NCBI GenBank assembly: GCA_002269645.1
Contig: NIVC01001585.1
Span: 1 to 64,000, forward strand
DNA length: 64,000 bases
Direction of reading: 5' to 3'
From: Macrostomum lignano
Lineage: Eukaryota
Shown: positions 6,410-58,689 of the stretch, one piece after another
Position numbering within the stretch: the first letter of the stretch is position 1
Layout of the letters: each line of letters starts with the position of its first letter
The notes under the pieces: generated by a model
What the model was told of the DNA's origin: nothing
Seen by the model: the letters and a program-made list of their open reading frames with translations, nothing else
Database searches by the model: none
Made by a program: the position numbers and the translations under genes

Positions 6410-6690
6410 TGTGTGCAGCACACAAGGGCGCGAATACGTACGCAGTCATACGCACAGGCACTCACTCACACAGGAGTGTACAGCGGCCCTAACTTTATTT
6501 ATCGTTAGGCATGTACACTTCACTGTGCCTTGGGGGTTGGCCCTTAAGCTGGGAATTACGAGCGTAATTGCACGAGCAGAGCCAAGCCGAGATTCCAATT
6601 TAGCCTCAAAATTAATGTGTCTCTACTTGGAATCGAGCCTGGACCGCTGGCACATCAGAGCGCCTCGCCAGACCACTGGTCTACACCCCC
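6410..6690 (-). mobile_element. tRNA-derived SINE family 2
   Basis: Minus-strand head GGTGTAGACCAGTGGTCTGG...GGCTCGATTCC (A and B boxes). Dispersed copies at 13000, 24370, 26870 and 47350. Confidence 0.75.
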
Positions 6691-6879
6691 ATGTTCTCTA
6701 CATGTAAAAATGCAGCCTCAATCTCATTGGACGAGCTTTGCTAGATCAATTATAACAAACTCTGGGATTGGTGAGTGCATAAAAAGCGATGATGATCTGC
6801 TCCCAAATATTAGAAATTCGTTATTGAGTTTTGTGCTACGATTTCAAATGCAAGATTAGCAAAATTTTAAAGTCTCGAA

Positions 6880-7663
6880 ATGAAGATCCTCAACAAATTC
6901 CCGGCAATCCTGCTCGAGCTGCAGAGCTTTCTGATCTCGGTGACAGCTGGCAGCAGCCGGTGCTCATCGCAGCAGGCATTCACAGCCGTGAACGCCAGCC
7001 TGTGCATCGGCAGCGAGTTCACGGAGACGCCCCTGGGCAGCAGCGCGGCAGCATCGGAGGTCCTGTGCTCGCTGCTCTGCGCCAGCAGGCCCCGCTGCCA
7101 GGCCTTCAGCTTGGCCCGCGGCCCCTGCCAGCTGTTCGTGTTCGACAGGTGCAGCAAAGGCGTGCGGGACTGCAGCGCCAGCTGCTCGGCCTTCGGTCTG
7201 GTCTTCGTGAAGCAGCGACCGGGCCTGCCGCCTGGAAAACTCTGCCCGCCTGAGTTCGATTCCCAGCGAGTTCGATTCCCAGGTTCGCTACCGGCTGGTG
7301 AACGGCACGGCCGGCTGGCAGAGGGGCCGGCAGGTCTGCGCCAACCAGACCGACCTCGTCATCATGGCCGACGTGCTGGACGCTGAGGAGCTGCGCTTCA
7401 TCAACTCCCAGTTCAGCGGCCTGAACATCTGGCTCGGTGGCCACCAGGAAGAGGGAAGTCCCGAGCCAGGCGGAGGGTGGCGGTGGCTGGACTGTGGTCT
7501 GGAGTTCGATCCCAGCCTGTGGGCTGCAGCTGAACCAAATGACGGTGGAAATGCCGAGAAGTACATTCTCCACTACTCGGGCACAGCTGGCCTGGTAGAC
7601 GCACCAGAAACGCTGTCTTTCCCAACGAATGCCCTGTGCGAGTGCGTCTCGCCGTTTGAATGA
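6880..7663 (+). pseudogene. Secreted PAN/Apple + C-type lectin gene, copy 1, frameshifted at about 7268
   Basis: ORF 6880..7386 has a signal peptide and PAN-like C-x3-C-x5-C-x-AF-x6-C. ORF 7298..7663 has the CTLD (WLGG, W-R-W, WAAAEPND, terminal CEC). Copy 2 is continuous across this junction. Confidence 0.8.
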
Positions 7664-8414
7664 CGTGTGCTTGTCATTAGTGATACTCGAGCTCAACTGC
7701 TATAAAAATCGCTACGTGGGAATAGTGAAGTCTTCGTGTGATGCCCCGATATCGCGGAGTTAATGGATTTTCCTGAACAAAACTGAAAAAAATGTTTTCA
7801 GATTATTCGTGTCCCAGGAAACACCCACAAGTGCTTCACGTGGCGCATCGATGCGCAAAAAATTGAACGAACGAGTGGCAGTCAATTGGATAATATAAAA
7901 CCCTTTTTGCCCACTTTATATCTGTCAATTTGATAAAAAACCATACATTGCTTTGTTGCTCGTGGCTACTAAAAGTAAGGCTAGTAAGATAATTGGGATA
8001 CTTTTGCTATGAAACAGCAGAAAATCTCTTAGCAAATATCAATCAAATTGTTTATCATTAGGGAGTTGGATTTCTTCGGTCCTCGTTTTAAATATTTTAG
8101 TAATGGAATTAGAAGTACGAGCTATCTCACAGCACTCTACGAGTAGGTTAGAAAAATATGTTATTTTCTGCGTTAAGTTGGCACAAAACCGTACCAGTAG
8201 TACACTAACACGGTTGTATATAGATTTATGATTCGTTTTTCAAATTCAAAAAACAACAGATCTCCTTCGACCCATCCTGTTCAATTCCTTGACGGCGGCA
8301 TCCTGCTGGCTCTGATTGTCTTCTTCACCGGGCTGCTCTGTCAAATCGCTGTTGCTCAGTCGTCTCTGAAATTGCGGATAAACAGGGGCAGTGAATTCGG
8401 CACATCGATGGGTT

Positions 8415-9335
8415 TTAATGCTGAGAAACATTACAATTTAAAGCCTTATTTACCCCTTGATTGAGCAGTGTTTTTAGTAGAGGAGACTTTTCAAAGGTGG
8501 ATAAACGTTCGGTTAGCTTCAGGACTTTTTCCTTCAGTTGTCCGACTTCAATGGCCCTCTGTTTATCTCTGGTCTTGAGCTTCATCAACAAATTATTGAT
8601 TTCTTTTAGTTCGGAGTCCTTTCGCTGCAGCTCCTGTTGGAAGCGCTGCACCGTGAGCTCCAGGTGGCCATCGGTACCCGAGCAGTAGTGCTCATCGAGC
8701 TGCGACATTGCCACGTTCGTCTGACACCCGATGCTCTGTCGGTACTTGCAGTCGCTCGGTCTCTCCGGACAGGTCATCAGGTGCTCCTCGAACTCCGAGC
8801 GGTACAGCCTGCTGCTCGAGTCGCTGCAGTGAGGACACGGAGCTCGGAACTCGGAGCAGCAGTGAGGAGACCGCAGATCCGTGTGGCAGCCGTTCAGCTC
8901 GAACTGACGGACTCGCTCCGAGCAGCGGTCGCACGTGACGATCTCGAACTGGCACTCGTTGGTCAGATGAGAGTCCAGCTGCTTCAAGGTGAGCCGCTTC
9001 TCACAGCCGGACTCTTCGTTCGGGCATCGGACTTCAAGTTCGAGCACGTCCTTACGTGTTGCAGTGTCGGGGAAGCAGACAGCCTGACTCACAAAGTGCT
9101 CAACAAGTCTCGCACGGTCTCTGCAGCTGTCCAGCGAATGAATGCAGGGACAGACTCGATCGCTGGATTGCAGCAGCTCGGTGCTGAAGCACCGCTGGCA
9201 CAGGCGGCATCCGTGCGGAGTCTGGTAGGAATTTATGAGCAGCTCTGAGCAGCCGCTGCACATTAAATGGTTCGGTATCGGCTTGTTTCGAATTTTGATA
9301 GAAGATAAATCGCTTCGCACTAAAGCTTGCTCCAT
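8415..9335 (-). CDS. TRAF-like RING/zinc-finger protein, copy B1, no MATH domain
   Basis: CSGC...QTPHGCRLCQRC...CPC RING-like region; FPDTATRKDVLELEVRCPN-x-GC-x-HL-x-CQF; further zinc fingers; coiled coil. Confidence 0.85.
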   Translation of the reverse strand: MEQALVRSDLSSIKIRNKPIPNHLMCSGCSELLINSYQTPHGCRLCQRCFSTELLQSSDRVCPCIHSLDSCRDRARLVEHFVSQAVCFPDTATRKDVLELEVRCPNEESGCEKRLTLKQLDSHLTNECQFEIVTCDRCSERVRQFELNGCHTDLRSPHCCSEFRAPCPHCSDSSSRLYRSEFEEHLMTCPERPSDCKYRQSIGCQTNVAMSQLDEHYCSGTDGHLELTVQRFQQELQRKDSELKEINNLLMKLKTRDKQRAIEVGQLKEKVLKLTERLSTFEKSPLLKTLLNQGVNKALNCNVSQH

Positions 9336-10167
9336 TTTAGCTTGCTATGGGTGTCATTCAACTTGCGACGTAAAATTTGCGGCTTCTACACAGCAAGCTC
9401 GCGAATTTCTCATCCAAAACAGTCACTGGTTATAACATAACAAAAGTAGGTACTACCGTGTTTGGAGTGTTTACAACTGGCTGCAACAACCCCAGGTAAA
9501 TGAATTCGGTTGTGTGCGTGCAAGTACATTTAAGCTATAGATAACCTAAAGAGGTTAGGGCTACTGTAGTCTGCAGTGAAGGGTTGTAGCTCGTACACTC
9601 GTTTCTCTTCTATTTCTCTTCTCAATTCTATTTATGGCAAGTACCCTGCAATGTTGTCAATTCAACAGAACTGTCCCACAGCGCGACCTGCACACTGAAA
9701 TTTATGCACGTGATGCGTCTTATCTTATTTTTAGTTGAACAACAAGTTTATGTAGTCGTTTGCACAGTTTTTAGTAAACAAGTATTGGTTAATTATGGTT
9801 TAATTTGAGTATCATTAACCCTATGTTGACTGTTGGATCCGAGGTCTCACCATCTGGACATTTGAAATGCAGCATGCATGCGTTTGGTCCGATGTGAACT
9901 CGCAAGTTAATTGAGCTACTATAACCACAGGATACACTAAAACTAATCTTGCAAAGTTCCGGCGAATATTTCAGCTACTGAAATCATTTTTTATATATGG
10001 CAAAACCTCATTGTATCTTACGCTCTTACGCACAGCGTTTTTCTTACAAGTTACAGGAGCGTCGCCATGGATTTTATGGTAGGGGAGACGAAGCCGAGAG
10101 TTCTACATCTACATATACATTACTAAATTCCTACATGTACATTATTTCCGAACCGGTGTTGTCAGCG

Positions 10168-10325
10168 ATCATTTTAGCGCCGCAGGCACTCATTTTGGCG
10201 CCGCAGGCACTCATTTTAGCGCCGCAGGCACTCATTTTAGCGCCGCATGCACTCAATTTAGCGCAGCAGGAACACATTTTAGTGCCACAGGCACTCATTT
10301 TAGCGCCGCATGCACTCAATTTAAT
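10168..10325 (+). repeat. 21-nt tandem repeat (CATTTTAGCGCCGCAGGCACT), about 7 copies, at the junction of the two duplication units
   Basis: Read directly from the sequence. Confidence 0.85.
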
Positions 10326-10404
10326 GGTGCAGATGCTATGTTTTGTCGCCCTGAAGTGAAATGATTGATTTCCATAACAGGTCAACAAGGTGGGGTAGGG
10401 GGGG

Positions 10405-10705
10405 ACAAAGCAGTGGCATGTCTCCTACGTTGTCGATCTGGCCAGCGTTCGACGGCCGTCAGCGTGTTGTTCGAGCTAGTCTATCAGCGTCTCAGGGTGT
10501 ACAGAGGCCCTAACTGTTTATCGGTCAGGCATATACACTCTCGAGCATTGGAGTTGGCTCTAATGGTTGTGAATCGCACGACAACCTCCGGTAATTGTGG
10601 GGTGAATGCGCCGCCTAGTTTAGTTCTCCGCCTAGCCACCCCTGCTTAATTGTACCGCAATGTCGATCCCCCCCCCAAACCCTAGGCTAGGTTGAGTCGC
10701 GATTG
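10405..10705 (-). mobile_element. SINE-like element family 3, copy 2
   Basis: Paralogous to 3835-4115. Confidence 0.5.
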
Positions 10706-10766
10706 ACTCTTTTCTCATTCGTTTATCTCACTCTAAAGGGAGATCGCTTGCGCCGTTACTGTCGCT

Positions 10767-11550
10767 TGCGCGGCTCAGCGTGCTTGGCTACGCCGACGAT
10801 CTCGCCCTCCTTTCCTCGACCGTCGAGGGCGCCCAGCGCCAGCTGGACCGGCTGGTAAGCGTTGCGGCGTCGGCCTGGTGGTCAACACGCAGAAGACCGT
10901 TGTGCTCTGCGTGCCGGACGACATTGAGGCTGCAATTTTCTGCCGAGGCGCAGACGCGCAGGTGACGAGGCTTCCGCGATGTCAGCAGTTCGTCTATCTC
11001 GGCGGTCTGGTACCTGACGTTCGTGAGGACCTGCGACTTTGCTGTGGACTTGCCTGGGCTGCCTTCCTTTTCGAGGAAGTCCAAGGCCCTACCTGACCGC
11101 CAGAGGGCGGCGTTGTTCCAGGCGGTGATCGAAACCGTACTGTTGTACAACGCCGAGACCTGGGCCCTGTCTGATTCACTCGAACAGCAGGTCGATGCGG
11201 CGCACGCTGGACTGCTGCGCGCCGCTTCAAGATCGGCTACGAGCGAGTCACCATTGCGGCACTCTATCGCCGCACCAGCCTGTCCCGTCCCAGCGAAATG
11301 TTGCGCCATCGACGACTCCAGCTGGCAAAGCCATTCTATCCGAGCCGAGTCGTACTGCCCACAGCCGGTGCAGGAAGTGCTTTTGCTCACGCTGCAGGAA
11401 CCTTACCGGCGGGGGCAGGCCCGCACTTGGCGTTTCGTCGACTGCCTGTTGGCTGATGCCGGCGGTGCGGCCTACGTTCGCGCCCAGGCCCTGAAACGCG
11501 CCCTGTGACATTGTCCCACGCTTGACTATCTGACGTATTTTTTGTTTTTG
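10767..11550 (+). mobile_element. RTE-like non-LTR fragment, copy 2
   Basis: YADD RT motif and the same downstream motifs as 4180-4980, with different frameshifts. Confidence 0.85.
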
Positions 11551-12999
11551 TTGTCGCTCTAGTTGATTGGCTCAGCCGTTTTTTGTGGCTACGTACGAGT
11601 GTAAGTCCCAGTTGTTGTCGTCCGTTTTTGGAAGGTTTTACTGGTTGGACGCGTCGTACGCCCGTCGCACCTCAACTGGCACGCGTGCCAGAGGCATTAG
11701 AGAATCACTCGAGCTGTCTGGTCCTAGCCGACTCTGCGTCGTACGTCAGTAGGTTGGGTGACCGCGGTGCTGCTTTGGACCATAAGTTTGGTACTTGCAT
11801 GTTAATTTGGTAGCATGTTAATTTGGTAGCATTCTGTCAGTGATATCTGCTTAAGTTGTTATGTGAAGGCCTGGTGTGGATTGGCTGGGCCGGGCAGCTG
11901 GCTCAGTTTTTCCTCACCCCCGCCGCGGTGTGATTGGCTGGCGTGGGGCAGGGCCTGTCGGGAGGGTTGTGGGGGTTGGTGGGCTCGGGGTTTGCAGCCT
12001 CTCCCCCCCCCCGCGTGCGCTAGCCATTTAAGGTAGTCTGGGCGTCGTCACTCGCCTCTCTATACCTAGTTTGGCTTTCGGTGCTGTCCTGTGATTGGTT
12101 TTCTCTCGCCGTAAGGACATTTTCCTATGGAAAAGATCCAATTCAAAGAGACGTATTGAAAGGAGCTAGGAAAGTTGGATGCGTTCCTCTGTCTTCCTTC
12201 TTTTGGTTGCCAAAAGGGGGCAACTAAGGCTTCGTGTGTCCTGACGCCTACTTACTGTAGTTTAGGCTACCTGGCGTCCTGATGCAGGTATGATCCGCAT
12301 AGGAACATCCTGACAACCGACAAGCAAGGTGCACCCGTACCCTGTACACCCTACCGTATTATATAGGCCCGAGGTGTAGGGATAACATCATTATTTTTTA
12401 CTGTTTCAGTGTATATCTTTTTTATCGTTTGCAGTACGAGCCAGTTTGTGTGGTAGTCATTTCAATAGTATTGTAACAATTTTTTAATAATAGTAATATT
12501 CTACAATTTAGTGTTTAAAATAAATTTGTTATACTGTATGATTTGTTTTAATGCGATTGATTTTTGTTAACTATGCTAGACTTTATTGGACCATAGGCGC
12601 GATCCAATAGGTAGCCAACTTAAATTAGTATTTATACAGAGGAGCGCAAGGAGAAAATTCTTTCACGGGTTTTAACCTTTTCTTAATCAGTTCTGAATCT
12701 GTAGTCTTATCTTAATCATTCTTCTAAAAGGAGTGTTTGTCGATAGAACAGTAATTGCAAAGAAAAACTCGTTTTGTTGCAGAGAAAAAGGCGTTCTTTC
12801 TGCAGTGAAACAATTGGTGTTTAACTGCTTTACACGTGTTGCAGAGTGAAGTAAAGGGGCAACTTGCCCTGTGCCAAGTGAAAAGCTATGGGGGGGGAGT
12901 CCCCTGGAAATGAAGAAAGCCGGGAACCTCTCGATCATTGATAACGCCGTTTTGGGACTTGACGCCTACAACAACTTGGTGTCAGCTTGTGTGCAGCAC

Positions 13000-13270
13000 A
13001 CAAGGGCGCGAATACGTACGCAGTCATACGCACAGGCACTCACTCACACAGGAGTGTACAGCGGCCCTAACTTTATTTATCGTTAGGCATGTACACTTCA
13101 CTGTGCCTTGGGGGTTGGCCCTTAAGCTGGGAATTACGAGCGTAATTGCACGAGCAGAGCCAAGCCAAGATTCCTATTTAGCCTCAAAATTAATGTGTCT
13201 GTACTTGGAATCGAGCCTGGACCGCTGGCACATCAGAGCGCCTCGCCAGACCACTGGTCTACACCCCCAT
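13000..13270 (-). mobile_element. tRNA-derived SINE family 2, duplicated copy
   Basis: Paralogous to 6410-6690. Confidence 0.75.
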
Positions 13271-13454
13271 GTTCTCTACATGTAAAAATGCAGCCTCAAT
13301 CTCATTGGACGAGCTTTTCTAGATCGAGTATAACAAACTCTGGGATTGGTGAGTGCATAAAAAGCGATGATCTGCTCCTAAATATTAGAAATTCGTTATT
13401 GAGTTTTGTGCTACGATTTCAAAAGCAAGATTAGCAAAATTTTAAAGTCTCGAA

Positions 13455-14970: not shown

Positions 14971-15885
14971 TCAGGGGCAGTGAATTCGGCACATCAATGG
15001 GTTGTACTGCAGAGAAACATTACAATTTAAAGCATTATTTACCCCTTGGTTGAGCAGTGTTTTTAGTAGAGGAGACTTTTCAAATAGGAATAAACGTTCG
15101 GTTAGCTTCAGGACTTTTTCCTGCAGTTGCCCGACCGAATTATTCATTTCTTTTAGTTCGGAGTCCTTTTGCTGCAGCTCCTGTTGGAAGCGCTGCACCG
15201 TGAGCTCGAGGTGCCCGTCGGTACCCGAGCAGTAGTGCTCATCCAGCTGCGACATTGCCATGTTCGTCTGACACCCGATGCTCTGTCGGTACTTGCAGTC
15301 GCTCGGTCTCTCCGGACACGTCATCAGGTGCTCCTGGAACTCCGAGCGGTCCAGCCTGCTGCTCGAGTCGCTGCAGTGAGGACACGGAGCTCGGAACTCG
15401 GAGCAGCAGTGAGGAGACCGCAGATCCGTGTGGCAGCCGTTCATCTCGAACTGACGGACTCGCTCCGAGCAGCGGTCGCACGTGACGATCTCGAACTGGC
15501 ACTCGTCGGTCAGATGAGAGTCCAGCTGCCTCAAGGTGAGCTGCTTCTCACAGCCGGACTCTTCGTTCGAGCATCGGACTTCAAGTTCGAGCACGTCCTT
15601 TCGTGTTGCAATGTCGGGGAAGCAGTCGGCCTGACTCACGAAGTGCTCAACAAGTCTCGCACGGTCTCTGCAGCTGTCTAGCGAATGAATGCAGGGACAG
15701 ACTCGATCGCTGGATTGCAGCAGCTCGGTGCTGAAGCACCGCTGGCACAGGCGGCATCCGTGCGGAGTCTGGTAGCAGTTGACGAGCAGCTCTGAGCAGC
15801 CGCTGCACTTAAAGCGGTCCGGAATTGGCTCGTTTTGAATTTCGGTGGAAGTGAAATTGCTGCGAACTAAAAAAGCAGACTCCAT
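14971..15885 (-). CDS. TRAF-like RING/zinc-finger protein, copy B2
   Basis: Paralog of B1. ATG at 15885 (MESAFLVRS) aligns with the B1 start (MEQALVRS). Confidence 0.85.
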   Translation of the reverse strand: MESAFLVRSNFTSTEIQNEPIPDRFKCSGCSELLVNCYQTPHGCRLCQRCFSTELLQSSDRVCPCIHSLDSCRDRARLVEHFVSQADCFPDIATRKDVLELEVRCSNEESGCEKQLTLRQLDSHLTDECQFEIVTCDRCSERVRQFEMNGCHTDLRSPHCCSEFRAPCPHCSDSSSRLDRSEFQEHLMTCPERPSDCKYRQSIGCQTNMAMSQLDEHYCSGTDGHLELTVQRFQQELQQKDSELKEMNNSVGQLQEKVLKLTERLFLFEKSPLLKTLLNQGVNNALNCNVSLQYNPLMCRIHCP

Positions 15886-16533
15886 TACTTTGCTGGTTTC
15901 TTTCGAATTGCAACTTTCAATTCGCGGCTGCTGCAATTATTGTCTATATGAATATATCAGCACACAGCAGCTCGCACATTCGCCAACCTAAACAATCACT
16001 AGTGACTATATAGCAAAAGTAGGTACTACCGTATTCGGAGTGTTTACAAGTGTCTACAACAACCCCAGTGAATTGAAGTTGTTTATGCGCAATTACAATA
16101 AAGCTATAGACTAAAGAGGTTACGGCTACTGTAGCCTGCAGTGAATGATTGTACACTCGTTTCTAAAAGCGTACTCGATCTCTCTTACCTTGCAAATGCT
16201 ATTTACGGCAATTACACTGCAATGTTATCAATTCAACAGAATGGTCATACAGCTCGACCTGCACACCGACAATTAATTTACGCACGTGACGCGTCTTGTC
16301 TTACTTTAGTTTAAAGCTACACGCGGATGCAAAAACAGCTAGGCTTATAGCCGTCTGTACAACAGATGGTTAGGAATCAAGTGCTGGTTAATTAGTTTAA
16401 TTTGAGTATCAATGACTCTTAAAATTTTGACTGTTGTATCCGATGTCGCCTTCTGGACATTCGAAATACAGCATGGATGCGTTCTGTCCGATATGTGCAC
16501 TCGCAAGTTCATTAAGCAATTTGAACTAATCAT

Positions 16534-29950: not shown

Positions 29951-30711
29951 CGTTGGTGAAAGATTATTGTTTTTACAATAGACATTCTCAGCCAGCCGAG
30001 AATTAACCAGCTGAAAGCATCAAACCAAGTGAGGTTTTTGCCATAGAAATTTTCATGGGGGCCGTTTTGCACGATGTATGAATGATATAACTGGATCGCC
30101 AGAAGCTCGATTTTTTGGTCCTAGCCATAGACAAGCACCAATGAAACAAAAAATCGAGCTTTTGGCAATCCAGTTATATCATTCATCCATGTTTTGGTGC
30201 AGTAGTCTATGGTTTAATTGTTTATTTCATTTATCCGCACCGGTGCAAATTAATGATTTATTTGCACTGGAACTGAGAACGAATATTTCAGTAGCGATGG
30301 ATGAATGAATCAATGACTATAAGAATGAATCTTAGTCAGACACTCCAGCCGTCTCCCTTCTTCTTCACTTACCGGTACAGTTACGCTTCAGACCACAGAA
30401 AAATGATGGATACATGGTATAAATGTATAATAGCACTGGTATAAATGGGGAATATATACCATATACGAGTATTTCCCAGACTAATAAACTGAGCGAAACT
30501 GGTAATTTGCACAATGCAAAAGCGGGCAAAGAAATGGCTGTTTCTCCAAGTTTCTCTGATTATTCTCCAATTCCCAGTTGTGTCGCAGCGGGGGCGATCC
30601 CTTATTGCAGTGCCAATTTCCAAATTTGGTTCCACGCGCCAGTGATCACACAAGAATTCCGTCCCGCTTCTGATCGCTTTCTCATCTTTGCCCGCCCTTC
30701 CTGCCACTCCA

Positions 30712-32700
30712 TCTCTCTCCTATCTCTCCGTGAGTCCCTCCGATCTCTCCCTGAGTCTCTCCTATCTCTCCCTGAGTCGCTCCGATCTCTCCCTGAGTCG
30801 CTCCGATCTCTCCCTGAGTCTCTCCTATCTCTCCCTGAGTCTCTCCTATCTCTCCCTGAGTCGCTCCGATCTCTCCCTGAGTCTCTCCTATCTCTCCCTG
30901 AGTCTCTCCTATCTCTCCGTGAGTTCCTCCGATCTCTCCGTGAGTCCCTCCGATCTCTCCCTGAGTCTCTCCTATCTCTCCCTGAGTCTCTCCTATCTCT
31001 CCCTGAGTCTCTCCTATCTCTCCATGAGTGTCTCCTATCTCTCCATGAGTCTCTCCTATCTCTCCATGAGTCTCTCCTATCTCTCCCTGAGTCTCTCCTA
31101 TCTCTCCCTGAGTCGCTCCGATCTCTCCCTGAGTCTCTCCTATCTCTCCCTGAGTCTCTCCTATCTCTCCCTGAGTCTCTCCTATCTCTCCCTGAGTCTC
31201 TCCTATCTCTCCGTGAGTTCCTCCGATCTCTCCGTGAGTCCCTCCGATCTCTCCCTGAGTCTCTCCTATCTCTCCATGAGTGTCTCCTATCTCTCCATGA
31301 GTCTCTCCTATCTCTCCATGAGTCTCTCCTATCTCTCCATGAGTCTCTCCTATCTCTCCATGAGTCTCTCCTATCTCTCCCTGAGTCTCTCCTATCTCTC
31401 CCTAAGTCTCTCCTATCTCTCCCTGAGTCTCTCCTATCTCTCCATGAGTCTCTCCTATCTCTCCCCGAGTCCCTCCTATCTCTCTCTGAGTCTGTCCTAT
31501 CTCTCCCTGAGTCTCTCCTATCTCTCCCCGAGTCTCTCCTATCTCTCCATGAGTCTCTTCTATCTCTCCCTGAGTCCCTCCGATCTCTCCCTGCGTCTCT
31601 TCTATCTCTCCCTGAGTCTCTCCTATCTCTCCATGAGTCTCTCCTATCTCTCCCTGAGTCTCTTCTATCTCTCCCTGAGTCTCTCCTATCTCTCCCCGAG
31701 TCTCTCCTATCTCTCCCCGAGTCTCTCCTATCTCTCCCTGAGTCTCTCCTATCTCTCCCTGAGTCGCTCCGATCTCTCCCTTAGTCTCTCCTATCTCTCC
31801 CTGAGTCTCTCCTATCTCTCCCTGAGTCTCTCCTATCTCTCCCTGAGTCTCTCCTATCTCTCCGTGAGTTCCTCCGATCTCTCCGTGAGTCCCTCCGATC
31901 TCTCCCTGAGTCTCTCCTATCTCTCCATGAGTGTCTCCTATCTCTCCATGAGTCTCTCCTATCTCTCCATGAGTCTCTCCTATCTCTCCATGAGTCTCTC
32001 CTATCTCTCCATGAGTCTCTCCTATCTCTCCCTGAGTCTCTCCTATCTCTCCCTAAGTCTCTCCTATCTCTCCCTGAGTCTCTCCTATCTCTCCATGAGT
32101 CTCTCCTATCTCTCCCCGAGTCTCTCCTATCTCTCCCTGAGTCCCTCCTATCTCTCTCTGAGTCTCTCCTATCTCTCCCTGAGTCTCTCCTATCTCTCCC
32201 CGAGTCTCTCCTATCTCTCCCTGAGTCCCTCCGATCTCTCCCTGAGTCTCTTCTATCTCTCCCTGAGTCTCTCCTATCTCTCCATGAGTCTCTCCTATCT
32301 CTCCCTGAGTTTCTCCTATCTCTCCCTGAGTCTCTCCTATCTCTCCCCGAGTCTCTCCTATCTCTCCATGAGTCTCTCCTATCTCTCCCTGAGTCCCTCC
32401 GATCTCTCCCTGAGTCCCTCCGATCTCTCCCCGAGTCTCTCCTATCTCTCCATGAGTCTCTCCTATCTCTCCCTGAGTCCCTCCGATCTCTCCCCGAGTC
32501 TCTCCTATCTCTCCCCGAGTCTCTCCTATCTCTCCATGAGTCTCTCCTATCTCTCCCTGAGTCCCTCCGATCTCTCCCTGAGTCCCTCCGATCTCTCCCC
32601 GAGTCTCTCCTATCTCTCCATGAGTCTCTCCTATCTCTCCCTGAGTCCCTCCGATCTCTCCCTGAGTCCCTCCTATCTCTCCCTGCGTCGCTCCTATCTC
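30712..32700 (+). repeat. 21-nt pyrimidine-rich minisatellite (TCTCTCCTATCTCTCCCTGAG)n
   Basis: Read directly from the sequence. Confidence 0.95.
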
Positions 32701-33194
32701 AGAATCTCACCTCATGTGAGATTCATTCAAGCTCTAGATATCGTACATTCGACCATAAATTCTCTGAATTGAAGCGGATATTCCTAGGGCTAGAAAAATT
32801 CTACGCGACCAGTGAATTAATGTTTTACATGTTCGAGTACATCTGCATCAGTCTTAGAACACTAGGAGCTCCCTGTCTGCTGGTCGCCTCTAACCATGTT
32901 AATTAATCTAATTTGATTGCTCTTCAAAGGAGGAAAGAACCGGAAAGCAGCTCTTTATATAGTTTCATTTGTACCAGCTGTGCTTCCTCTTATGCTATCT
33001 TCAAAAGCCCAACCGACTAGATAGGTGAAATTTTTTAACACATTTCAATGCGTACTGACGACGAATGTTAATGTATATTTTGCTGAGTGCATAAGCCACA
33101 ACAAAAATTTACGAAAATAGCTGCTAGGCTATCGCGAACAGAAAGTGCGATCGATACTGCGATTAGATAAACATAAAGACTAGATTTAGTTAAC

Positions 33195-50079: not shown

Positions 50080-50541
50080 AACTCTGGCCTCTCCCTGACT
50101 CTCCCTACGTCCCTTGGATCCTTTAAAATTTCTATCGTCTCTTTGTTTCCTCTCATCTCTCTCGTCCCTCGTCTCTCCTCTCTCCTCTCTCCCTTTTCCC
50201 CTCTTCTCTCGTATCTTCCCTCATCTCTCTTCTCTTTCATCTCTCTTATCTCATCTCTTGTCTCTTCTTTTCTCTCCCCTCTCCTCTCTCCTCTCTACTT
50301 TTTCGTTTTCTCTCTCTCCTCTCTCCCCTCTTCTCTCGTCTCTTCTCTCACCTCTTTCCTCTCTCTTTCCTCTCATTTCTTTTCTTGTTTTATCTCTTCT
50401 CTCTCCCCTCGTCGCTCGTCTCTTCCCTCACCTCTCTTCTCTCTTGTCTGCGTTTTTATCTCTCCTTTCTCTTCTTTTATCTTTTCTCTCTTATCTCTTC
50501 TCGTTTCTCTCTGCTCTGCGCTCTCTCTCTCTCTCTGTCTC

Positions 50542-50579
<38 letters not shown>

Positions 50580-51480
50580 ACTCTCTCTCTCATCTCTCCT
50601 CTCCCATCTCTCTTCTCCTCTCTACTCTCTCCCTTCTTCATTCTCCTATTTCCTCTTCTGTCTCCCTTTCTCTCCTCTCTCCTCTAGTCTCTGTAATCTC
50701 TTCTCTCTTATCTCTCCTCTGTTCTCTCTACTCTCCCATCTCTCGTCTGTTCACCCTCATCTCTGCTCTCTCATCTGTCATCTTTACTCTCTAATACGTT
50801 CTCTCACTTATCTCCTCTGTACTCTTCTCTTTCACCTCTTCTGACTCCTCTCTTTCCTTACTCCTCTCTTCTTTTCTCTTCCTTCTTCTATACTCTCTCT
50901 CCTCTATTATCTTCTCTCGTCTCTCTGCACTCTCCTCTCACCTTTTCCATCTCTCATCTTTACTCTCTCATCTCTCCTTTCATCTGTCTCATCTCTGCAA
51001 TCTCATCTCTTTCCTCTCTTCTCCTCCGCTTCCCTTTACTCTCTCATCTCTCCTTTCTCCCCTCTTCTTACACCCCTCTCTTATCTCTATCTCTTCTCTT
51101 CTCACTCCTCTCTCCCCATCTTATCTCCTCTCTTCTCTATCCTTTCTACTCTCTCCTCTCTAATCTCTCCTCTCTAATCTCTCCTCTCCTATTGACCCTG
51201 TCCTCTTCTTTCTGCTCTCTAATCTCTACTATCTTCTCACTCTTCTCTACTCTCCTCTCATCGATCCTCTGTCTCATCTCTCCCCTCTTCTCACCTTTAC
51301 TCTTTTCTCTCCCTCCTTTCTCCCCTCCTCTCGCTTCTTCCTCCCTTCTTCTCTGCTCTCTCCTCGTCCTCATCACTTGTCTCTTCCTCTTACTCGTATG
51401 TTCAATGTTTTCTCATATCCCCCTCTCGCCTCTCCTCTCTTCTAACAGTCTATTCCTTCTCCTTTCCACTCTCATCTGGC
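50080..51480 (+). repeat. CT-rich low-complexity tract
   Basis: Read directly from the sequence. Confidence 0.9.
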
Positions 51481-51789
51481 CTGCACATAAGCTGGATTCT
51501 TTATCTGGCTTTTGAAGTAAAAATCTGCCCATTCCTGCTTGGAAAGCCAGTTTGTGGGACGTAGTACTCTCACATACATGCGCAACAGTCGGCCGAGTCG
51601 GCCGATCCGGCCGACCGATTTGGCGGCCAACCAAGTAAGTCGCAAAATTGATTAACCGCCAAAAAAAACGAAAAAACAAAAGACGAAAAAGGGGAAAGGA
51701 AAAGGAAAAAATGAGAAAAAGGGAGCAAAGAGAAAGAGAAAAACACAAAAAGAGTTGTAAGTGCTGTAAGTTGCAGCACTGAAGACAAG

Positions 51790-53390
51790 GTAAGTCGCAC
51801 CGAGGGCAAGCTAAGTCGCACCGAGGGCAAGCTAAGTCGCAGCAGGACCGAGCTAAGTCGCACCGAGGGCAAGCTAAGTCGCAGCAGGACCGAGCTAAGT
51901 CGCACCGAGGGCGAACTAAGTCGCACCGAGCGAGAGCTAAGTCGCACCGAGGGCGAGCTAAGTCGCACCGAGGGCAAAATAAGTCGCACCGAGCGAGAGC
52001 TAAGTCGCACTAAGTCGCAGCAGGACCGAGCTAAGTCGCACCGAGGGCGAGCTAAGTCGCAGCAGGACCGAGCTAAGTCGCACCGAGGGCGAACTAAGTC
52101 GCACCGAGCGAGAGCTAAGTCGCACTAAGTCGCAGCAGGACCGAGCTAAGTCGCACCGAGCGAGAGCTAAGTCGCACCGAGGGCGAGCTAAGTCGCACCG
52201 AGGGCAAAATAAGTCGCACCGAGCGAGAGCTAAGTCGCACTAAGTCGCAGCAGGACCGAGCTAAGTCGCACCGAGGGCGAGCTAAGTCGCAGCAGGACCG
52301 AGCTAAGTCGCACCGAGGGCGAACTAAGTCGCACCGAGCGAGAGCTAAGTCGCACTAAGTCGCAGCAGGACCAAGCTAAGTCGCACCGAGGGCGAGCTAA
52401 GTTGCAGCAGGACCGAGCTAAGTCGCACCGAGGGCGAACTAAGTCGCACCGAGCGAGAGCTAAGTCGCACTGAGGGCGAGCTAAGTCGCAGCAGGACCGA
52501 GCTAAGTCGCACCGAGGGCGAACTAAGTCGCACCGAGCGAGAGCTAAGTCGCACTAAGTCGCAGCAGGACCAAGCTAAGTCGCACCGAGGGCGAGCTAAG
52601 TTGCAGCAGGACCGAGCTAAGTTGCACCGAGGGCGAACTAAGTCGCACCGAGCGAGAGCTAAGTCGCACTGAGGGCGAGCTATGTCGCAGCAGGACCGAG
52701 CTAAGTCGCACTAAGGGCGAGCTAAGTCGCACCGAGGGCAAAATAAGTCGCACCGAGCGAGAGCTAAGTCGCACTAAGTCGCAGCAGGACCGAGCTAAGT
52801 CGCACCGAGGGCGAACTAAGTCGCACCGAGCGAGAGCTAAGTCGCACTAAGTCGCAGCAGGACCGAGCTAAGTCGCACCGAGGGCGAGCTAAGTCGCACC
52901 GAGCGAGAGCTAAGTCGCACTAAGTCGCAGCAGGACCGAGCTAAGTCGCACTAAGTCGCAGCAGGACCGAGCTAAGTCGCACCGAGGGCGAGCTAAGTCG
53001 CACCGAGCGAGAGCTAAGTCGCACCGAGGGCGAGCTAAGTCGCAGCAGGACCGAGCTAAGTCGCATCGAGGGCGAACTAAGTCGCACCGAGCGAGAGCTA
53101 AGTCGCACTGAGGGCGAGCTATGTCGCAGCAGGACCGAGCTAAGTCGCACTAAGGGCGAGCTAAGTCGCACCGAGGGCAAAATAAGTCGCACCGAGCGAG
53201 AGCTAAGTCGCACTAAGTCGCAGCAGGACCGAGCTAAGTCGCACCGAGGGCGAGCTAAGTCGCACCGAGGGCGAGCTAAGTCGCACCGAGCGAGAGCTAA
53301 GTCGCACTGAGGGCGAGCTAAGTCGCAGCAGGACCGAGTAAGTCGCAGCAGGGCCGAGGTAAGTCGCAGCAGGACTGAGTTAAGTCGCAG
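51790..53390 (+). repeat. 21-nt array built on GCTAAGTCGCA, inside the hAT element
   Basis: Variant units GCTAAGTCGCACCGAGGGCGA, ...GCAGCAGGACCGA and ...CCGAGCGAGA; about 75 units by length. Confidence 0.95.
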
Positions 53391-53593
53391 AGCATCTTTA
53401 GGATTATTAGGATAGGATTAGTTTAGGATGAATTTAATGTATCACTTACTAGGGTGTAGGCTACGTGTGCATTAACGCATCAATTTGAAAAATTAAGAAT
53501 TACGAAGCCAGAAATGGCTAAGGAATAGAAATAGGGATAGAATAACTTATAAGCAGTAATTTTTCAGCCCTATTACAATTGCAAATCATACTT

Positions 53594-55616
53594 TTAATAA
53601 TATTTAATTAGCAAATTAAAACTGCAAGATTCTAACGGTCTTATATATGAACTTAGAAGAACTGTAGTCTGACCAGAGATTGTCCTTTCTGTAGCGCGTT
53701 CTGAAGCATCTGCATCTCTAGAGTCTGAATCAGAAAGATGGTCCTCTGTTTCAGATTCAGAGCTGTCATCTTCCATTCCAAACCGTCTAGCAAGAGGTAT
53801 GATTCTCGAACTGTATGTAAAGACAGTATGTAATGTTTCAGCATTAGGCAATAACACTGGGTTGAGCACATTAAATATTGAGTAGTCATCCTCAGGAAAA
53901 TAATTACGCAGCTGATCAATTATGCTATCAATGATTCGACTGCGAATCTCATCCAGTGCTGGATAAGCTCCCATGTCAACAACACTGCCACGTCCACTAG
54001 CATCAAATAATCTATTTCTTAGAGATCTGTCTGCAGCAGAACCTGGTTGCTTCAACTCAAACCTCTCTGTTGGATCGCTGCTTCCAGGGCCGGAAGGACA
54101 AGCAAAGTTAGAATAAGATAGGTCTCTTGTGTGACATCCTGAATGGTATTCCAGCTGCGGATATCCATCTGCAGTTCCCAAAACTCGACGACACTTGCAG
54201 GAAGCCAAAAAGTCCACAATGCGAGGACCATTGTTCGTTTTTAAGGTTTCTAGTGAATGGATAAGGTTAGTGTGGCGTTCTTGCAAGCCAATAAATGTAC
54301 CCTTGGCTCTTTGAAACTGCAAGGACTCAAATTCCAGTAATTTTAGAATGTCCATGAGAAATAGATGTAATGAATAATACCGGACATTTTGCAATGTTTT
54401 CAATAATCCAGAGGCAGTTGCTTTACTTTCGTCATCAAAGCCTGAGGAAGGTGATTTGATATTTTCTAAATTTGTCAGAAGCAAGTAGTACGACTTTCGA
54501 ATCACATCAAGAGCAGACACTTCCGATGCAACCCACCTGATGCGATATATTCTTTTTAATTCATAGAAAACCAAGTTGAGTGCTTCCGAAGTTTGTGCCA
54601 AAGATGCCTTACGTTTAACAGCGTGGCTCATATAAAATTTGTGTAGAGAATTTATATTCTTATCGAGATGTTGCATAAATGGGAAGATTTCAAAGGCATG
54701 ATAGATTGAAAGTTCTAACTTATGCGCTGCACAATGGTGCTGAAAAAATTGTTTGCTAGCCCAAGGCCTCAGTTGACTTATTAATCCCACTCGACTTCCT
54801 GTCATTACGGATGCACCATCAGTTGTCACCCCCAATAGCCTTCGTTTGATTTCATCTTCTAGCTTGTCATCCGAAAATAAACGGATGAGAAGTTCATAAA
54901 TGCTTCGTCCAGTCTCTACTTCAGTCAGACGTTTAAACCGATAAAAAACATCAAATGTTGGCTGTTTTCAAGAACTCTGAAGTATATCATGACGTAGCTG
55001 TTTGAATGAATATCAGACGTTGTATCTAGTACAATAGAAATCGGAAGATTGTCAGCACTTTTAATGTAATTCACAAATGTCCGATGCATTGTATTACTGA
55101 TTGATTCCACCATTGCTGCGGCACTTTTGCGATGCTTATGATGGCTCCCCATATCCAACCCATTTTTTACTTGTAAATCAATCATATTTGGATGAGCACT
55201 GAATGGAATATTAGATTTGACTTCGGCATAAACTGTTGTCAAAACTCGGGCTGTTATTTCATCTCGTTTAGTTTTAGCTAGTCTAGCGGCCTCATTCATC
55301 TGTTTGAGTTGCTTTGCAAGAACTGAAGTATGTTTTTCCTTCATCCACTTTATGGCGTCACTGAAGTGTATTTGATGAATGTTCCTGTAGTTTTCTTCGT
55401 ACGCTATCTTTTGCATGACCTTTGGGAATGTAGCCTTGTTCTGTTGCAAAAGTTAACTTACGTTGGCTCTCTAGATTTGTCTCCTTTTTCTTATGTGCAT
55501 TCAAAAATTTTCTGCAGATCCGACATTGTATTCCAGATCTTGATAGATCTTCGGTGTTTTGAACATATTGAAACCATGTCTTCATTTCTTGTGACACAAA
55601 TTTTCTTGAAAATGAT
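53594..55616 (-). pseudogene. ZNF862/KIAA1586-type hAT transposase (TTF-type zinc finger + DDE core), two frameshifts, C-terminal dimerisation region apparently missing
   Basis: RKF...WFQY...CRICRKF zinc finger; SIVLDTTSD; GVTTDGASVMTG; HCAAHKLEL; RWVAS. Frameshifts near 55360 and 54960. Confidence 0.88.
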
Positions 55617-55747
55617 CTGCAATGGTCAAATTAGAGAATATTTTGGGATTTGGACTATTTGTGAGTATCTAAAAGCAATATGCTAATAAGTGCAATACAC
55701 AATACACTATACATTAATTTACAGTTCGTCAGTTTCCATTTACTTAC

Positions 55748-57375
55748 TGTGACTGGTGCATCTCCAAAGAATGTAACCACTCCTCTCGAAAACCAGATGT
55801 ATCCTCCCAGTCCTTTTTAGGGAAAACTTCAATATTTTCGCCCATCATAGAGGAAGACGAGGGCTTTGATGCTGAAGTGGCTAGACATGCGTCTGCAGAT
55901 GTGCTTATGCATGGTATTTTTTTTTGCGATGGCCCTGCTTCTGCAGTATTTACTTGTACTATTTCAACATCACCTGAACCCCTTGAGTCGCTCGAATCTA
56001 AATCAACAATAGGACTTTGGCAAAGTGATCGTTTCGTTGATTGTCTTTGAATATTTACTTGCCTAATAATTTCCACTTGTAGTTTGCTTGTTTGCTGGTC
56101 ATTCTCCAACAACTCTCTTCTTTCCTGTACATTTGCAGCAGAGCAAAAATTAGAAGTTTCTGCAGCAGCAGTTTGAACAGCATGATCTCGATTAGCTGCT
56201 ATTTGCTCTGAAAATTCATAGGACCTGGCCAATTCACTACGGTGTGAGCTTTCAGAACATGGAGCTGGAGCAGGAGCTAGTCGCATTTCGATTCTTTCTG
56301 TTGCTGATGAAGCAGATGCTAATGCTGAGTCTGCCAATGTACCTGCTTCTCTTGAAGGTGTATTTATGATGGCTTCAATATTGTCCTCTAAAATCCAATG
56401 AGCACCTGAGCAGTCATTTTCTCTACCTGGAGTCAACTGTCCAAGTTTCCACCTTGTAAAAAGCAAAGGCTTTCGTAACTCACTGCTGGATTCAGGGCAC
56501 CGGTTTATTGAATAGTCCTCATGACCAAGTTCATCCCATTCTCTTGCTGGCTTTAAGATGTAGTTGGGCTTGTCTCTTAGCCTACGATAAATGGACTAAA
56601 AAAATGTGCACCTGTTATTTTGTGTACTTCGTGCATAGATGATCATGTCATGCACATTGTTCCTAATAATTTCAGCTAATGAGTTATCAATGATAATTTT
56701 ATCTTCATAAACAGGTCTTCTTTGTGTTGCATGCATTTTAGCTAGTCGCAGTTTTCCAATGCTACTGGCAGTTGTGGAACTTGAACTGTCCGATTCTGAT
56801 CTAGAAAAGTCTCGTTGATACAAGAGAATAATGGCCATAGCACTTTTACCATTCCCATTCTTTAATGCATTTGGTTCTGTTGGAATTGTCTTACTAGCAG
56901 ACTTGAAAAAATCAATGATGGATGACTGCGATGATCCACTAGGAGCGGAACTTGGCAGCCCATGTCTAGTTTTTCCCTGATACCCAATAGATGTATCGGT
57001 AAAAAACATATCTGCTGCTTCCTGCTTCTCTTTTGATGCAATAACAAAGAAACTGCTGTCCGTTTTGAAGCCCGAGGACCGATAGAAGTCAGCAGAAAAT
57101 GAAACCACAGGTCGTCTAAAATCGCCGCTATATTCTTGAACTCCAATCAGAAGAAAATCACGGAGTCTCACTGGCACTGATCCTAATAGCATTGCAGTTG
57201 TGGAACAAACTTTCTTCAGCTCAATGAACTCTGAAAATTCTTGAGATCCAATATTAGGCTCATCAGTATTTAACTCATTTATAACAATTGAGCACTCACT
57301 CTCAGCTAGAATACCATTGATAGCTAGGATGCCACTTAGAATCAGTAGGCAAAGACAACTAAGGCTGTACATCAT
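55748..57375 (-). pseudogene. Signal peptide + lamin-tail-domain-like module + Ser/Ala/Glu-rich linker, one in-frame TAG (56598-56596), splicing in frame to the transposase
   Basis: MMYSLSCLCLLILSGILAINGILA; IVINELNTDEP...EFIELKK; the same frame continues past the TAG to LTPGRENDC. Donor CA|gtaagt at 55747, acceptor ttgcag|A at 55617. Confidence 0.7.
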
Positions 57376-57819
57376 TCTGTGAAAGATTAAGTCGAGTATA
57401 TGATTTTGGTGATAAAATAAAATTGATTTATGAGTATTACTATATAAATAAAACATTTAAAAGCCCTTACCTTTACCAATTCATGTACAGAAAGTAAGTG
57501 TAAATACAACCAATTGCCTTGGTAGTTTAGTTATATGCTCGTATCAGATGCAGGCAGACAGCATAGGCTGCCAAGGTGCTATAAGTTAAGGTTAACTTTC
57601 ACTATTTGGCTTTACAGACTGCTTTTATCGCTGCATGCATTGACTTAGCCTTAGCTTGTGCCATCATACTCATACAGCTATATATACATATGTATCTCTG
57701 CCACTCCCCACTTTTGCAACCTTACACTGTACAATCATGCCTAAAACACTCCGTGTCAAGTGTACTGTTCTAGTGCCACATGGGGTACAAATACGATTAG
57801 GAATGACAAGAGTCAAAAC

Positions 57820-57900
57820 CATACATGCACAATAGTTGGCCGATATGGACGACTGATTTGGCGGCCAACCAAGGTAAGTTGCAAAAATGCCCACCCAAAT
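57820..57900 (+). repeat. Internal direct copy of the hAT left terminus
   Basis: CATACATGCACAATAGTTGGCCGA...GATTTGGCGGCCAACCAAGGTAAGTTGCAAAA, compared with 51573-51650. Confidence 0.85.
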
Positions 57901-58689
57901 AAATACCAAAGTAGTATTAAGTAGCTGACGAAGCATTTTGCCTTAATAAAGACAGTTATAGTTACTCCTGCCGTTTACCCAAAGTTGCGTTAATTTTGCT
58001 TTCAGGTTTTTTTCATGTAAGTCGCATTTTTGGCCGAAAACTACGTCGCATTTTTGTTAAAACTAAGTCGCACGGCCGACCAAATTTTGGAGGTTGCGCA
58101 TGTATGTACTCTCATGGCTGTTCTCATGCTTTGATCACGTCATCTTTCTTGCCAATTTGCAGTCCTGAAAGGAATTTATGTATCTTCAGCTCCACTGCAG
58201 TCTGCATCAGTCTAACAATCAAGGAAATACGCATTTCTTAGGAGGACATTTAAAATTTAAAGTACTTTTAAGAGAAACAAAATTTCCATGGTGTGCCTAA
58301 TTTAGTAGGGTTGTATTGCATTGCATTGCCTTTTCATAAATCTTTCACTTTCACAAACCATGCCAGATTGCCTTGATTTGCCAATTGCCATCCTCTGTTA
58401 AACTGCTGCAGAGTTTGCCAATACAGAGGTGAGGGCAGTGGTTAGAATTTCTCACTAAACTGTTGTGGCTAAACGTAGCCTCCACGGGGGTGCAAAGAGT
58501 GATATAAAGAAAGCTATTCCAAAACACTGTACATTTGCTATGTACATTCAGTCCTATTGCCTGACCCTTGGTCTGGCTCTGGGGGAATGAGTGAGTGAGT
58601 GGCACAAATAACAGAAAAAGCAGACAAACTTCACGTGCTTACAGTTTCTGTTCTGATTGGGTTACAGAGTTGAAATTTTACATTTTGAC

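Follow-up and report, generated by a model that had tools for sequence, protein, structure and literature searches.

We analyzed a 64,000-nucleotide stretch of Macrostomum lignano DNA (GenBank assembly GCA_002269645.1, contig NIVC01001585.1, positions 1 to 64,000 of the forward strand), referred to here as the window. It contains a hAT transposon of 6,534 bp (51573–58106) with a single minus-strand gene, in which a leader, a lamin-tail-domain (LTD)-like module, a linker, an intron, a zinc finger and a transposase follow one another in that order. The fusion is native and not captured. Its architecture characterizes a whole clade of hAT transposases and is under purifying selection. The explanation that we favor as a whole, with moderate confidence, is a native signal-peptide–LTD–hAT fusion whose functional transposase would pass through the secretory pathway. 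One part of this explanation can be held more firmly. Judged from sequence features, the leader is likely functional, and the whole chain, transposase included, likely enters the endoplasmic reticulum (ER).

To our knowledge, the DNA transposases described so far in eukaryotes are all regarded as proteins that pass from the cytosol to the nucleus, and we know of none in the secretory pathway. Here, a whole hAT clade carries three features that do not fit this view: a conserved secretory-type leader, an LTD module and a lumenal signature of sequon loss over the catalytic core. Full-text literature searches uncovered no transposase described as carrying an LTD or a signal peptide. Searches on LTD, signal peptide or secretion together with transposase or hAT gave nothing relevant. 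An earlier note on this DNA (hereafter the original prediction) also knew of no description of the architecture.

The fused gene and its family

The gene begins with an ATG and a signal-peptide-like leader (MMYSLSCLCLLILSGILAINGILA, next residues ESEC; 57375–57304, minus strand), both identified by sequence reading. The LTD-like module of about 310 aa follows (56356–57294, minus strand; C28...INELNTD...EFIEL...NRC...TPGRENDC). It opens with CSIVINELNTDEP...EFSEFIEL, closes with LTPGRENDCSGAHW, and was characterized by profile comparison, by the ratio of nonsynonymous to synonymous substitution rates (dN/dS) and by AlphaFold 2 (AF2) modeling. Translation then gave an acidic Ser/Ala-rich linker (55748–56355, minus strand), which contains QKKIP, a basic cluster in degenerate form, as well as the conserved motif DWEDTSGF, and ends in DWEDTSGFREEWLHSLEMHQS. 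The coding sequence is interrupted by a phase 2 intron of 131 nt (55617–55747, minus strand; GTAAGT..CAG, donor at 55747 and acceptor AG at 55617). Removal of the intron fuses ...HQS-Q-SFSRKF... in frame, and its retention leads to an immediate stop (CAG TAA). Exon 2 (53669–55616, minus strand) encodes a putative BED/TTF-like zinc finger and then the hAT DDE core, with 98% identity to PAA56523 and 69% to PAA88322. Its Asp codons are at 55026–55024 (ISIVLDTTSD) and 54820–54818 (GVTTDGASVM), and further hAT motifs are HCAAHKLEL and RIRWVASE. An intron in the 5' untranslated region (UTR) was also predicted by sequence reading (57377–57470, minus strand, GT..AG). Comparable GT..AG or acceptor sites are present upstream of the ATG in the related loci L001, L004 and L007. 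Every part of the originally predicted gene model was located, from the ATG at 57375 through the leader, IVINELNTD..EFIEL, LTPGRENDC and the linker to the in-frame 131-nt intron. The predicted length of the fusion, about 1,200 aa, was too short; the intact family protein has about 1,310–1,340 aa.

Three further copies flanked by target-site duplications (TSDs) were found at unrelated M. lignano sites, and the 14-bp terminal inverted repeat (TIR) was identical in two subfamilies. The L006 copy (7117–13011; TSD CTTGGGTT) is 99.6% identical to the window copy. The L005 copy (8079–13323; TSD AATTTAAA) is 5'-truncated and belongs to a subfamily of about 72% identity. The L007 copy (4539–10902; TSD TAACATCC), also of a 72%-identical subfamily, has an intact open reading frame (ORF). 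A miniature inverted-repeat transposable element (MITE) of 297 bp with identical 14-bp TIRs lies 220 bp from this intact element (L007, 11122–11418; TSD TCCAGAAA). At least 18 annotated M. lignano paralogues on many contigs, including PAA56523 relatives, fell into one 90% protein cluster. From the near-identical dispersed copies (99.6%) and the MITE, we infer that the family transposes.

The L007 gene encodes PAA51197.1 (1313 aa), which runs from the leader through the LTD-like module, linker, zinc finger and core to the dimerization domain and provides the intact fused ORF that was sought in the family. A single 104-nt GT..AG intron breaks up this ORF, at a codon and phase that match those of the window intron. 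RNA-seq data and transcript assemblies underlie the M. lignano annotation containing PAA51197.1 (PMC5730564), so the splice between its exons 1 and 2 has transcript support by way of the annotation. This sister-subfamily model uses a splice equivalent to the 55748/55616 junction that had been predicted for the window copy. The LTD region is kept in L004, a homologue of 53% identity that comes from another sequencing sample, and so are the intron site, phase 2 and GTAAGT. Intron retention in L004 also leads to an immediate stop (GTG TAA). L001, a related copy with 92% identity that comes from another sample, has an insertion of about 660 bp in its 5' region (427–1086), and its coding intron contains a CACTCC-type microsatellite (2963–3040).

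A hidden Markov model (HMM) of the N-terminal module was searched against 1.84 billion representatives from an environmental and genomic protein collection. It retrieved 188 homologues, 91 of them at E ≤ 1e-10. Seventeen distant proteins, all 900 aa or longer and each from its own 50%-identity cluster, are single ORFs without intron and are collinear with PAA51197.1, the module lying at about 30–400 and the transposase at about 515–1300. They are LTD-like–hAT fusions beyond the window copy. PF05699 was present in four of the scanned fused relatives. Two of the 17 proteins are encoded on AT-rich eukaryotic contigs of 73–77 kb, and one of these neighbors BTB and (faint) F-box sequences. The original prediction would have been refuted by other copies lacking the LTD region, and this was not the case: L006, L007, L004 and the 17 distant proteins all carry the module. 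Between subfamilies, dN/dS was 0.13–0.14 for the LTD-like module and 0.36–0.39 for the linker.

The family modules (70) were compared with seven Pfam-confirmed LTDs using hhalign. The probability was 97.7% in local and 98.6% in global mode, with E values of 1e-12 to 1e-14 over 100–129 columns, so the profile comparison did not reject the predicted LTD. The family profile retrieved PF00932 proteins from bacteria and animals (E 1e-52 to 1e-6). With the Pfam LTD model, the window protein gave no match, and 7 of 56 relatives matched weakly (best E 0.0011). The AF2 model of the module of about 320 aa, based on a 56-sequence alignment, had a predicted local distance difference test score (pLDDT) of 84 and a predicted template modeling score (pTM) of 0.85. 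Its first 165 residues or so are strand-rich and are followed by a helix-containing extension. A Foldseek search of the PDB with the whole 320-aa model found no lamin entry among the matches, and the module HMM gave one chance match only against PDB sequences. On the profile evidence, the N-terminal module is a divergent, extended LTD-like domain, homologous to LTD and below the level of Pfam membership. It differs from PF00932 LTDs in its length (about 310 aa versus about 110), its helix-containing extension, its invariant cysteines and its score below the Pfam threshold. C233, C270 and C299 are nearly invariant. Two invariant N-x-C motifs, S-I-N-R-C and E-N-D-C, were also observed in the module (56356–57294); their cysteines may serve in disulfides, in metal binding or in atypical sequons. 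A basic DNA-binding module was considered as well and was unsupported, as the median pI of 6.2 is acidic to neutral.

For the transposase half, precomputed annotations and scans placed PF27073 and PF05699 on intact copies and distant relatives. A search of the PDB with the transposase matched Hermes and nothing else, and the Glu of AERGFS in intact copies is aligned to catalytic residue E572 of that protein. In the zinc finger, a C-x2-C ... H-x5-H pattern is readable; Pfam zf-BED matched weakly (E=0.064), and the TTF model gave no match. A Pfam scan of the window ORFs and of frame-corrected translations of 675 aa and 543 aa gave nothing useful with a model set without PF27073. The scan was uninformative for the window copy because PF27073 lies outside this set and the C-terminal domain is deleted. 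The family has 8-bp TSDs, short TIRs, a DDE/RNase-H core and a PF05699 domain with Glu. The window copy itself lacks the PF05699 domain and the catalytic Glu owing to a 506-bp deletion. These results place the element in the hAT superfamily, of which it is a member of the DUF4371/PF27073 group. This group, also named 'FAM200-ZBED5 RNase-like', includes relatives of KIAA1586, ZNF862, C17orf113 and ZBED5. With hAT transposons (Hermes, Ac, hobo) and the PF27073 group, the family shares the 8-bp TSD, short TIRs, a putative BED/TTF-like finger, a DDE core with insertion domain, a C-terminal dimerization motif with catalytic Glu, subterminal repeats and MITE derivatives. The difference is that the M. 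lignano family adds about 540 N-terminal residues, comprising leader, LTD-like module and linker.

Leader, sequons and putative trafficking signals

The leader was scanned in 74 family N-termini, taking about 25 residues before the I-N-E strand. Mean hydropathy over nine residues (KD9) with a threshold of ≥ 2.0 was used as the measure. This threshold was reached in 84% of the N-termini versus 5.5% of equal-length internal windows of the same proteins, and the mean hydropathy of the leader h-region was about 2.9 in 84% of members. The median leader has 25 aa and the median hydrophobic run 10 residues, with runs of at least 19 in only 2 of 74, indicating a signal-peptide length and not a membrane-anchor length. 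A crude −3/−1 rule was satisfied in 60 of the 74 N-termini. The leader is conserved in hydrophobic character, not in sequence. In L007, an in-frame stop lies directly 5' of the ATG. By its n/h/c features, the leader looks like a secretory-type (Sec/signal peptidase I-like) signal peptide. Bona fide PF00932 proteins, secreted bacterial and metazoan multi-LTD ones, share the same layout, in which a leader precedes the LTD with its (V/I)-x-I-N-E-x-N...E-F-I-E-L strand pair. A translated pyrimidine tract was ruled out as the source of the leader on two grounds: T made up 47% of the bases at codon position 2 but only 19% of those at position 1, and L007 has the in-frame stop before its ATG.

N-glycosylation sequons (N-x-[ST]) were then counted in the 17 fused proteins (19,088 residues) and compared with expectations from per-protein shuffles. 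There were 37 sequons versus 145 expected (ratio 0.25, Poisson P ~1e-26), and all 17 proteins had fewer than expected. The depletion was equal across the chain, with ratios of 0.32 for the N-terminal part and 0.31 for the transposase part, and a set of 70 LTD modules counted separately gave 0.29. Within the 17 fused proteins, the control motifs had ratios of 0.96 ([ST]-x-N), 1.31 (D-x-[ST]), 1.08 (Q-x-[ST]) and 1.19 (N-x-x-[ST]). Nine LTD-less hAT relatives had 35 sequons versus 34 expected (ratio 1.02), and bona fide LTD proteins had a ratio of 1.16. The M. lignano fused proteins contain zero sequons; for PAA51197.1, 9.6 were expected. The N-x-C motif, in contrast to the four-fold depleted N-x-S/T, was three-fold over-represented in the fused family.

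A loss of sequons has been described as a mark of proteins recruited to the secretory pathway: the ER Hsp70 BiP has almost none, whereas Hsp70s of other compartments have several (PMC5562741). The fused family resembles the comparison of BiP/Kar2 with cytosolic Hsp70, in that the secretory members are almost sequon-free and the non-secretory relatives normal. It differs in that BiP works in the ER lumen, where a transposase has no known substrate. The purge of sequons from the catalytic half suggests that fitness-relevant molecules are exposed to the lumenal oligosaccharyltransferase of the ER, and its extension along the whole chain favors real ER entry over a vestigial leader. Two cysteines, Cys5 before the I-N-E strand and Cys34 after E-L-K, covary (47 both, 14 neither, 9 discordant; Fisher 6e-8, phylogeny-uncorrected). 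This pair and the invariant cysteines are compatible with disulfides.

A basic cluster was found 14–40 residues upstream of WE[DT]TxxF in 41 of 50 members. It takes the form RKR[KR] in many, PKKKRV in one relative and QRKRP in the intact subfamily-1 protein P0001. The best-conserved basic cluster is encoded in exon 1, upstream of the intron. Nuclear import through this conserved cluster, which resembles a nuclear localization signal (NLS), and the K-rich C-terminal clusters is plausible. A furin site was rejected as an identity for the cluster, with R-x-[KR]-R fitting 11 of 50 members and the NLS-like pattern 41 of 50. No second hydrophobic segment, transmembrane segment or KDEL-like retrieval end was found in the fused family proteins. 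Without a transmembrane segment or a KDEL-type signal, the default fate of the family protein would be secretion.

The C-terminus of the fused family is a conserved [LI]-F-COOH (SGLF, SRLF, SLLF, DTIF, STIF, SELF, SRIF, SNLF), read in P0025, P0031, P0044, P0047, P0062, P0090, P0116, P0158 and P0005. A DDPR motif and the K-rich clusters precede this end, which is missing from LTD-less relatives. The [LI]-F end could be a sorting or interaction motif. Compared with the retrieved LTD-less hAT relatives, sequon depletion and the [LI]-F end are peculiar to the fused family.

Proposed route and alternative explanations

In the explanation that we propose, the family gene would give one chain of about 1,310–1,340 aa, composed of leader, LTD-like module, acidic linker with NLS-like cluster and WEDTxxF, zinc finger, DDE core and dimerization domain. 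The whole chain, transposase included, would be translocated co-translationally into the ER lumen, and the fitness of the element would depend on molecules that had passed through it. Default secretion would then be followed by a second step to chromatin. This step might be uptake by a cell, after which the conserved basic clusters would direct the protein into the nucleus; alternatively, the protein might return from the ER to the cytosol. Of the two, we slightly favor secretion and re-uptake, in which the LTD would serve as an extracellular or carrier module. Taken singly, secretion followed by uptake is a tentative proposal, and the intracellular return route stands at a similarly low level. 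In the nucleus, the protein would act as an ordinary hAT transposase, binding the TAAGTCGCA repeats described below and the TIRs, excising the element and reinserting it with an 8-bp TSD. A rather doubtful extension is a non-cell-autonomous transposase. It would be secreted by one cell, kept glycan-free by selection and taken up by another, for example a germline or stem cell, where its basic clusters would bring it into the nucleus and it would mobilize resident copies in trans.

Parts of this scheme have counterparts in known systems. Bacterial LTD nucleases with an Exo_endo_phos domain (ExeM/NucH type; P0207) carry the LTD N-terminal to the nuclease, as in the M. lignano fusion, but the M. 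lignano module is joined to a eukaryotic transposase and not to an endonuclease/exonuclease/phosphatase nuclease. Angiogenin and DNase1L3 are secreted nucleases with a signal peptide and nuclear-targeting basic clusters; once taken up or released, they act on nucleic acids of the nucleus. They resemble the fused family in joining a nuclease with a signal peptide and NLS-like clusters; however, they are host genes and not transposases, and uptake or release of the family protein is hypothetical. Errantiviruses (gypsy/ZAM) are likewise mobile elements that encode a secretory-pathway protein, possibly for cell-to-cell movement. They have separate env genes and transfer nucleic acid, whereas here the secretory module is fused to a DNA transposase.

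If the proposed explanation is true, transposition in this clade includes an undescribed trafficking step, in which the protein enters the ER, is probably secreted and later gains access to chromatin. Export and re-import would make it a new selfish-element route to the germline or between cells or individuals, and the protein a natural cell-entering, DNA-integrating enzyme. A non-cell-autonomous transposase, if real, would parallel, at the protein level, the envelope-mediated passage of errantiviruses from soma to germline, and it could sidestep silencing of the target cell, whether transcriptional or by piRNAs. Should the trafficking part fail, the transposase architecture would still be new and conserved, and the module would still add a new, divergent branch to the LTD fold. 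The trafficking question is directly testable, since M. lignano transgenesis and intact copies both exist.

Several points weigh against passage of a functional transposase through the secretory pathway or against parts of the argument for it. We know of no route from the lumen or the exterior to nuclear DNA for a transposase. No family member reaches the Pfam LTD gathering score (34.3 bits), and the Foldseek search of the PDB with the whole 320-aa model, uncropped, gave weak Ig-like (Fab/VHH) matches (E ≥ 0.037). Mobility is shown in Macrostomum only; a crude search on AT-rich contigs found no convincing TIRs or TSDs around the fused ORFs in L008–L011. In many of the annotated M. lignano models, the first residues are MKTWFQY, encoded 10 codons into exon 2, so mRNAs lacking exon 1 may exist. 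Lysine content was 6.85% versus 7.5%, which is no toxin-type depletion, and toxin-like escape from the ER is ruled out on this ground. In the statistics, the control set of the sequon test was small (the nine LTD-less proteins), and the Cys5/Cys34 covariation ignores phylogeny. The original prediction had called a secretion signal on a nuclear-acting transposase paradoxical. The paradox persists, and the sequon depletion of the whole chain sharpens it.

Among the alternatives, an ordinary nuclear transposase survives best, and we consider it unlikely. The leader would be unused, bypassed or a structural or membrane-peripheral helix, yet an exposed N-terminal h-region with a mean hydropathy of about 2.9, as found in 84% of members, is what the signal recognition particle classically takes as its substrate. 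The LTD would be an accessory domain for DNA, chromatin or lamina binding or for oligomerization. LTD is the Ig-fold of nuclear lamins, whose tail binds DNA and chromatin, and the fold search shows that the LTD-like module is not obviously extracellular; however, a median pI of 6.2 is ill-suited to a non-specific DNA binder, and the cysteine pair covaries. Direct import would suit an enzyme that must work on nuclear DNA and has a conserved NLS-like cluster, but it leaves unexplained the four-fold purge of N-x-S/T in both halves, which the LTD-less relatives lack.

A two-product, self-limiting gene is less likely again. Here, the ER-targeted fusion or a secreted exon-1 protein made by intron retention would be a sink or a separate cargo, and the active enzyme would be leaderless, through trans-splicing or an internal start in exon 2, or would be the small fraction left untranslocated. 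The immediate stops upon intron retention (CAG TAA in the window copy, GTG TAA in L004) recall the P element, which makes a repressor through intron retention, but the model cannot apply to the 17 distant relatives, each of which is one intron-less ORF. A leaderless enzyme would agree with the many annotated models beginning at MKTWFQY in exon 2 and with the trans-splicing of 38.8% of M. lignano genes (PMC5730564). The best-conserved basic cluster, however, is encoded in exon 1. The model also predicts neutral sequons in the transposase half, where the observed ratio was 0.31 versus 0.32 in the N-terminal part. This depletion argues against a leaderless isoform or an untranslocated minority being the only active form.

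It is very improbable that the members outside Macrostomum are domesticated or extracellular nucleases and that only the flatworm lineage is mobile. The L008–L011 ORFs, around which no TIR or TSD was found, would fit such a history, but the TIR search was crude and the contigs are AT-rich. The leader–LTD–nuclease layout is known from bacteria, as in P0207 (LTD + Exo_endo_phos). Nevertheless, the proteins retain the full hAT core and the dimerization domain, many partial copies per sample suggest multi-copy elements, and the mobile M. lignano elements would be left unexplained. Finally, hAT elements do capture host fragments and the Pfam scan left both halves of the window copy unannotated, but a one-off exon capture or chimeric gene model involving an unrelated secreted LTD gene, adjacent or transduplicated, is refuted by the position of the module inside the TIRs in all examined copies, by the same intron in two subfamilies and in the 53%-identical homologue from another sample, by the 17 collinear distant ORFs and by the dN/dS of 0.13.

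The window copy and its surroundings

The window copy is a recently inserted, now inactivated copy of an autonomous hAT transposon. Its left TIR, CATACATGCGCAAC (51573–51586, plus strand; 14 bp), lies at the 3' end of the gene and is the exact reverse complement of the right TIR at the 5' end of the gene (58093–58106, minus strand; 14 bp, 100% complementary). Directly outside the left TIR is the 8-mer TACTCTCA (51565–51572), of which an exact 8-bp duplicate follows the right TIR (58107–58114). Both the exact TIRs and the TSD of the original prediction were thus found. In a scan of the window, the exact TIR was restricted to the two ends of the element, and shuffles predicted 0.29 matches. A near-copy of the TIR with 2 mismatches, CATACATGCACAAT, lies about 270 bp inside the 5' end (57820–57833).

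Tandem Repeats Finder (TRF) detected a 1.6-kb tandem array (51791–53389, plus strand) of units of about 21 bp, each with TAAGTCGCA. This motif has 80 matches in the window versus 0.42 expected, all within the element. About 77 copies are in the internal array, on a constant strand, and the motif also adjoins both TIRs (51636, 58018, 58064). The array was found in L005 and L006 too and is longest in the window copy. It looks like an expanded subterminal repeat and is predicted to bind the transposase.

Alignment to the 99.6%-identical copy L006 and comparison with intact proteins revealed four lesions in the window copy. The first is a premature TAG (56598–56596, minus strand) in place of Glu (FFESIY in intact copies). 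The second is a 2-nt (CA) deletion at about 55362, which causes a frameshift in the zinc-finger region (55361–55364, minus strand). The third is another frameshift, a 1-nt deletion in a T-run (54948–54943, minus strand; 6 T versus 7 T in L006). The fourth is a 506-bp deletion with AG microhomology at its junction (53671–53668, minus strand). The original prediction had the stop and both frameshifts right and overlooked the deletion. The deletion takes away about 135 C-terminal residues, including the hAT dimerization domain and the catalytic Glu, together with the true stop. Past the deletion point, intact proteins continue with ...ISGQFGLLLKSL...LPISSAEAERGFS...SGLF and include the motif SSAEAERGFS. 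Because the true stop was removed, the ORF reads through into the former 3' UTR and ends at 53594; its spurious tail (53594–53668, minus strand) is 3' of the stop codon in intact L006. Loss of the dimerization domain and the catalytic Glu makes the window copy catalytically dead, even without counting the frameshifts.

The flanks of the insertion (58151–58306 and 51456–51546) match a contiguous stretch of L005 (14789–15176) at 75–87%. The element therefore seems to be inserted into another repeat, and the L005 stretch may be a paralogous empty site. A CT-rich low-complexity tract of 1.2 kb (50148–51365) ends about 200 bp from the TSD of the element. Two long ORFs of 988 aa (37986–40952, minus strand) and 694 aa (30423–32772, plus strand) have no Pfam match. 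Host-gene ORFs at 34076–35683 (minus), 49–1023 (plus), 8415–9335 (minus) and 14971–15936 (minus) comprise a rhodopsin-family G-protein-coupled receptor and three TRAF-type zinc-finger ORFs. The window also contains a 27-bp tandem array with about 35 copies of GGTCACACCTGAGACACGTGAAATGAC (46038–47028).

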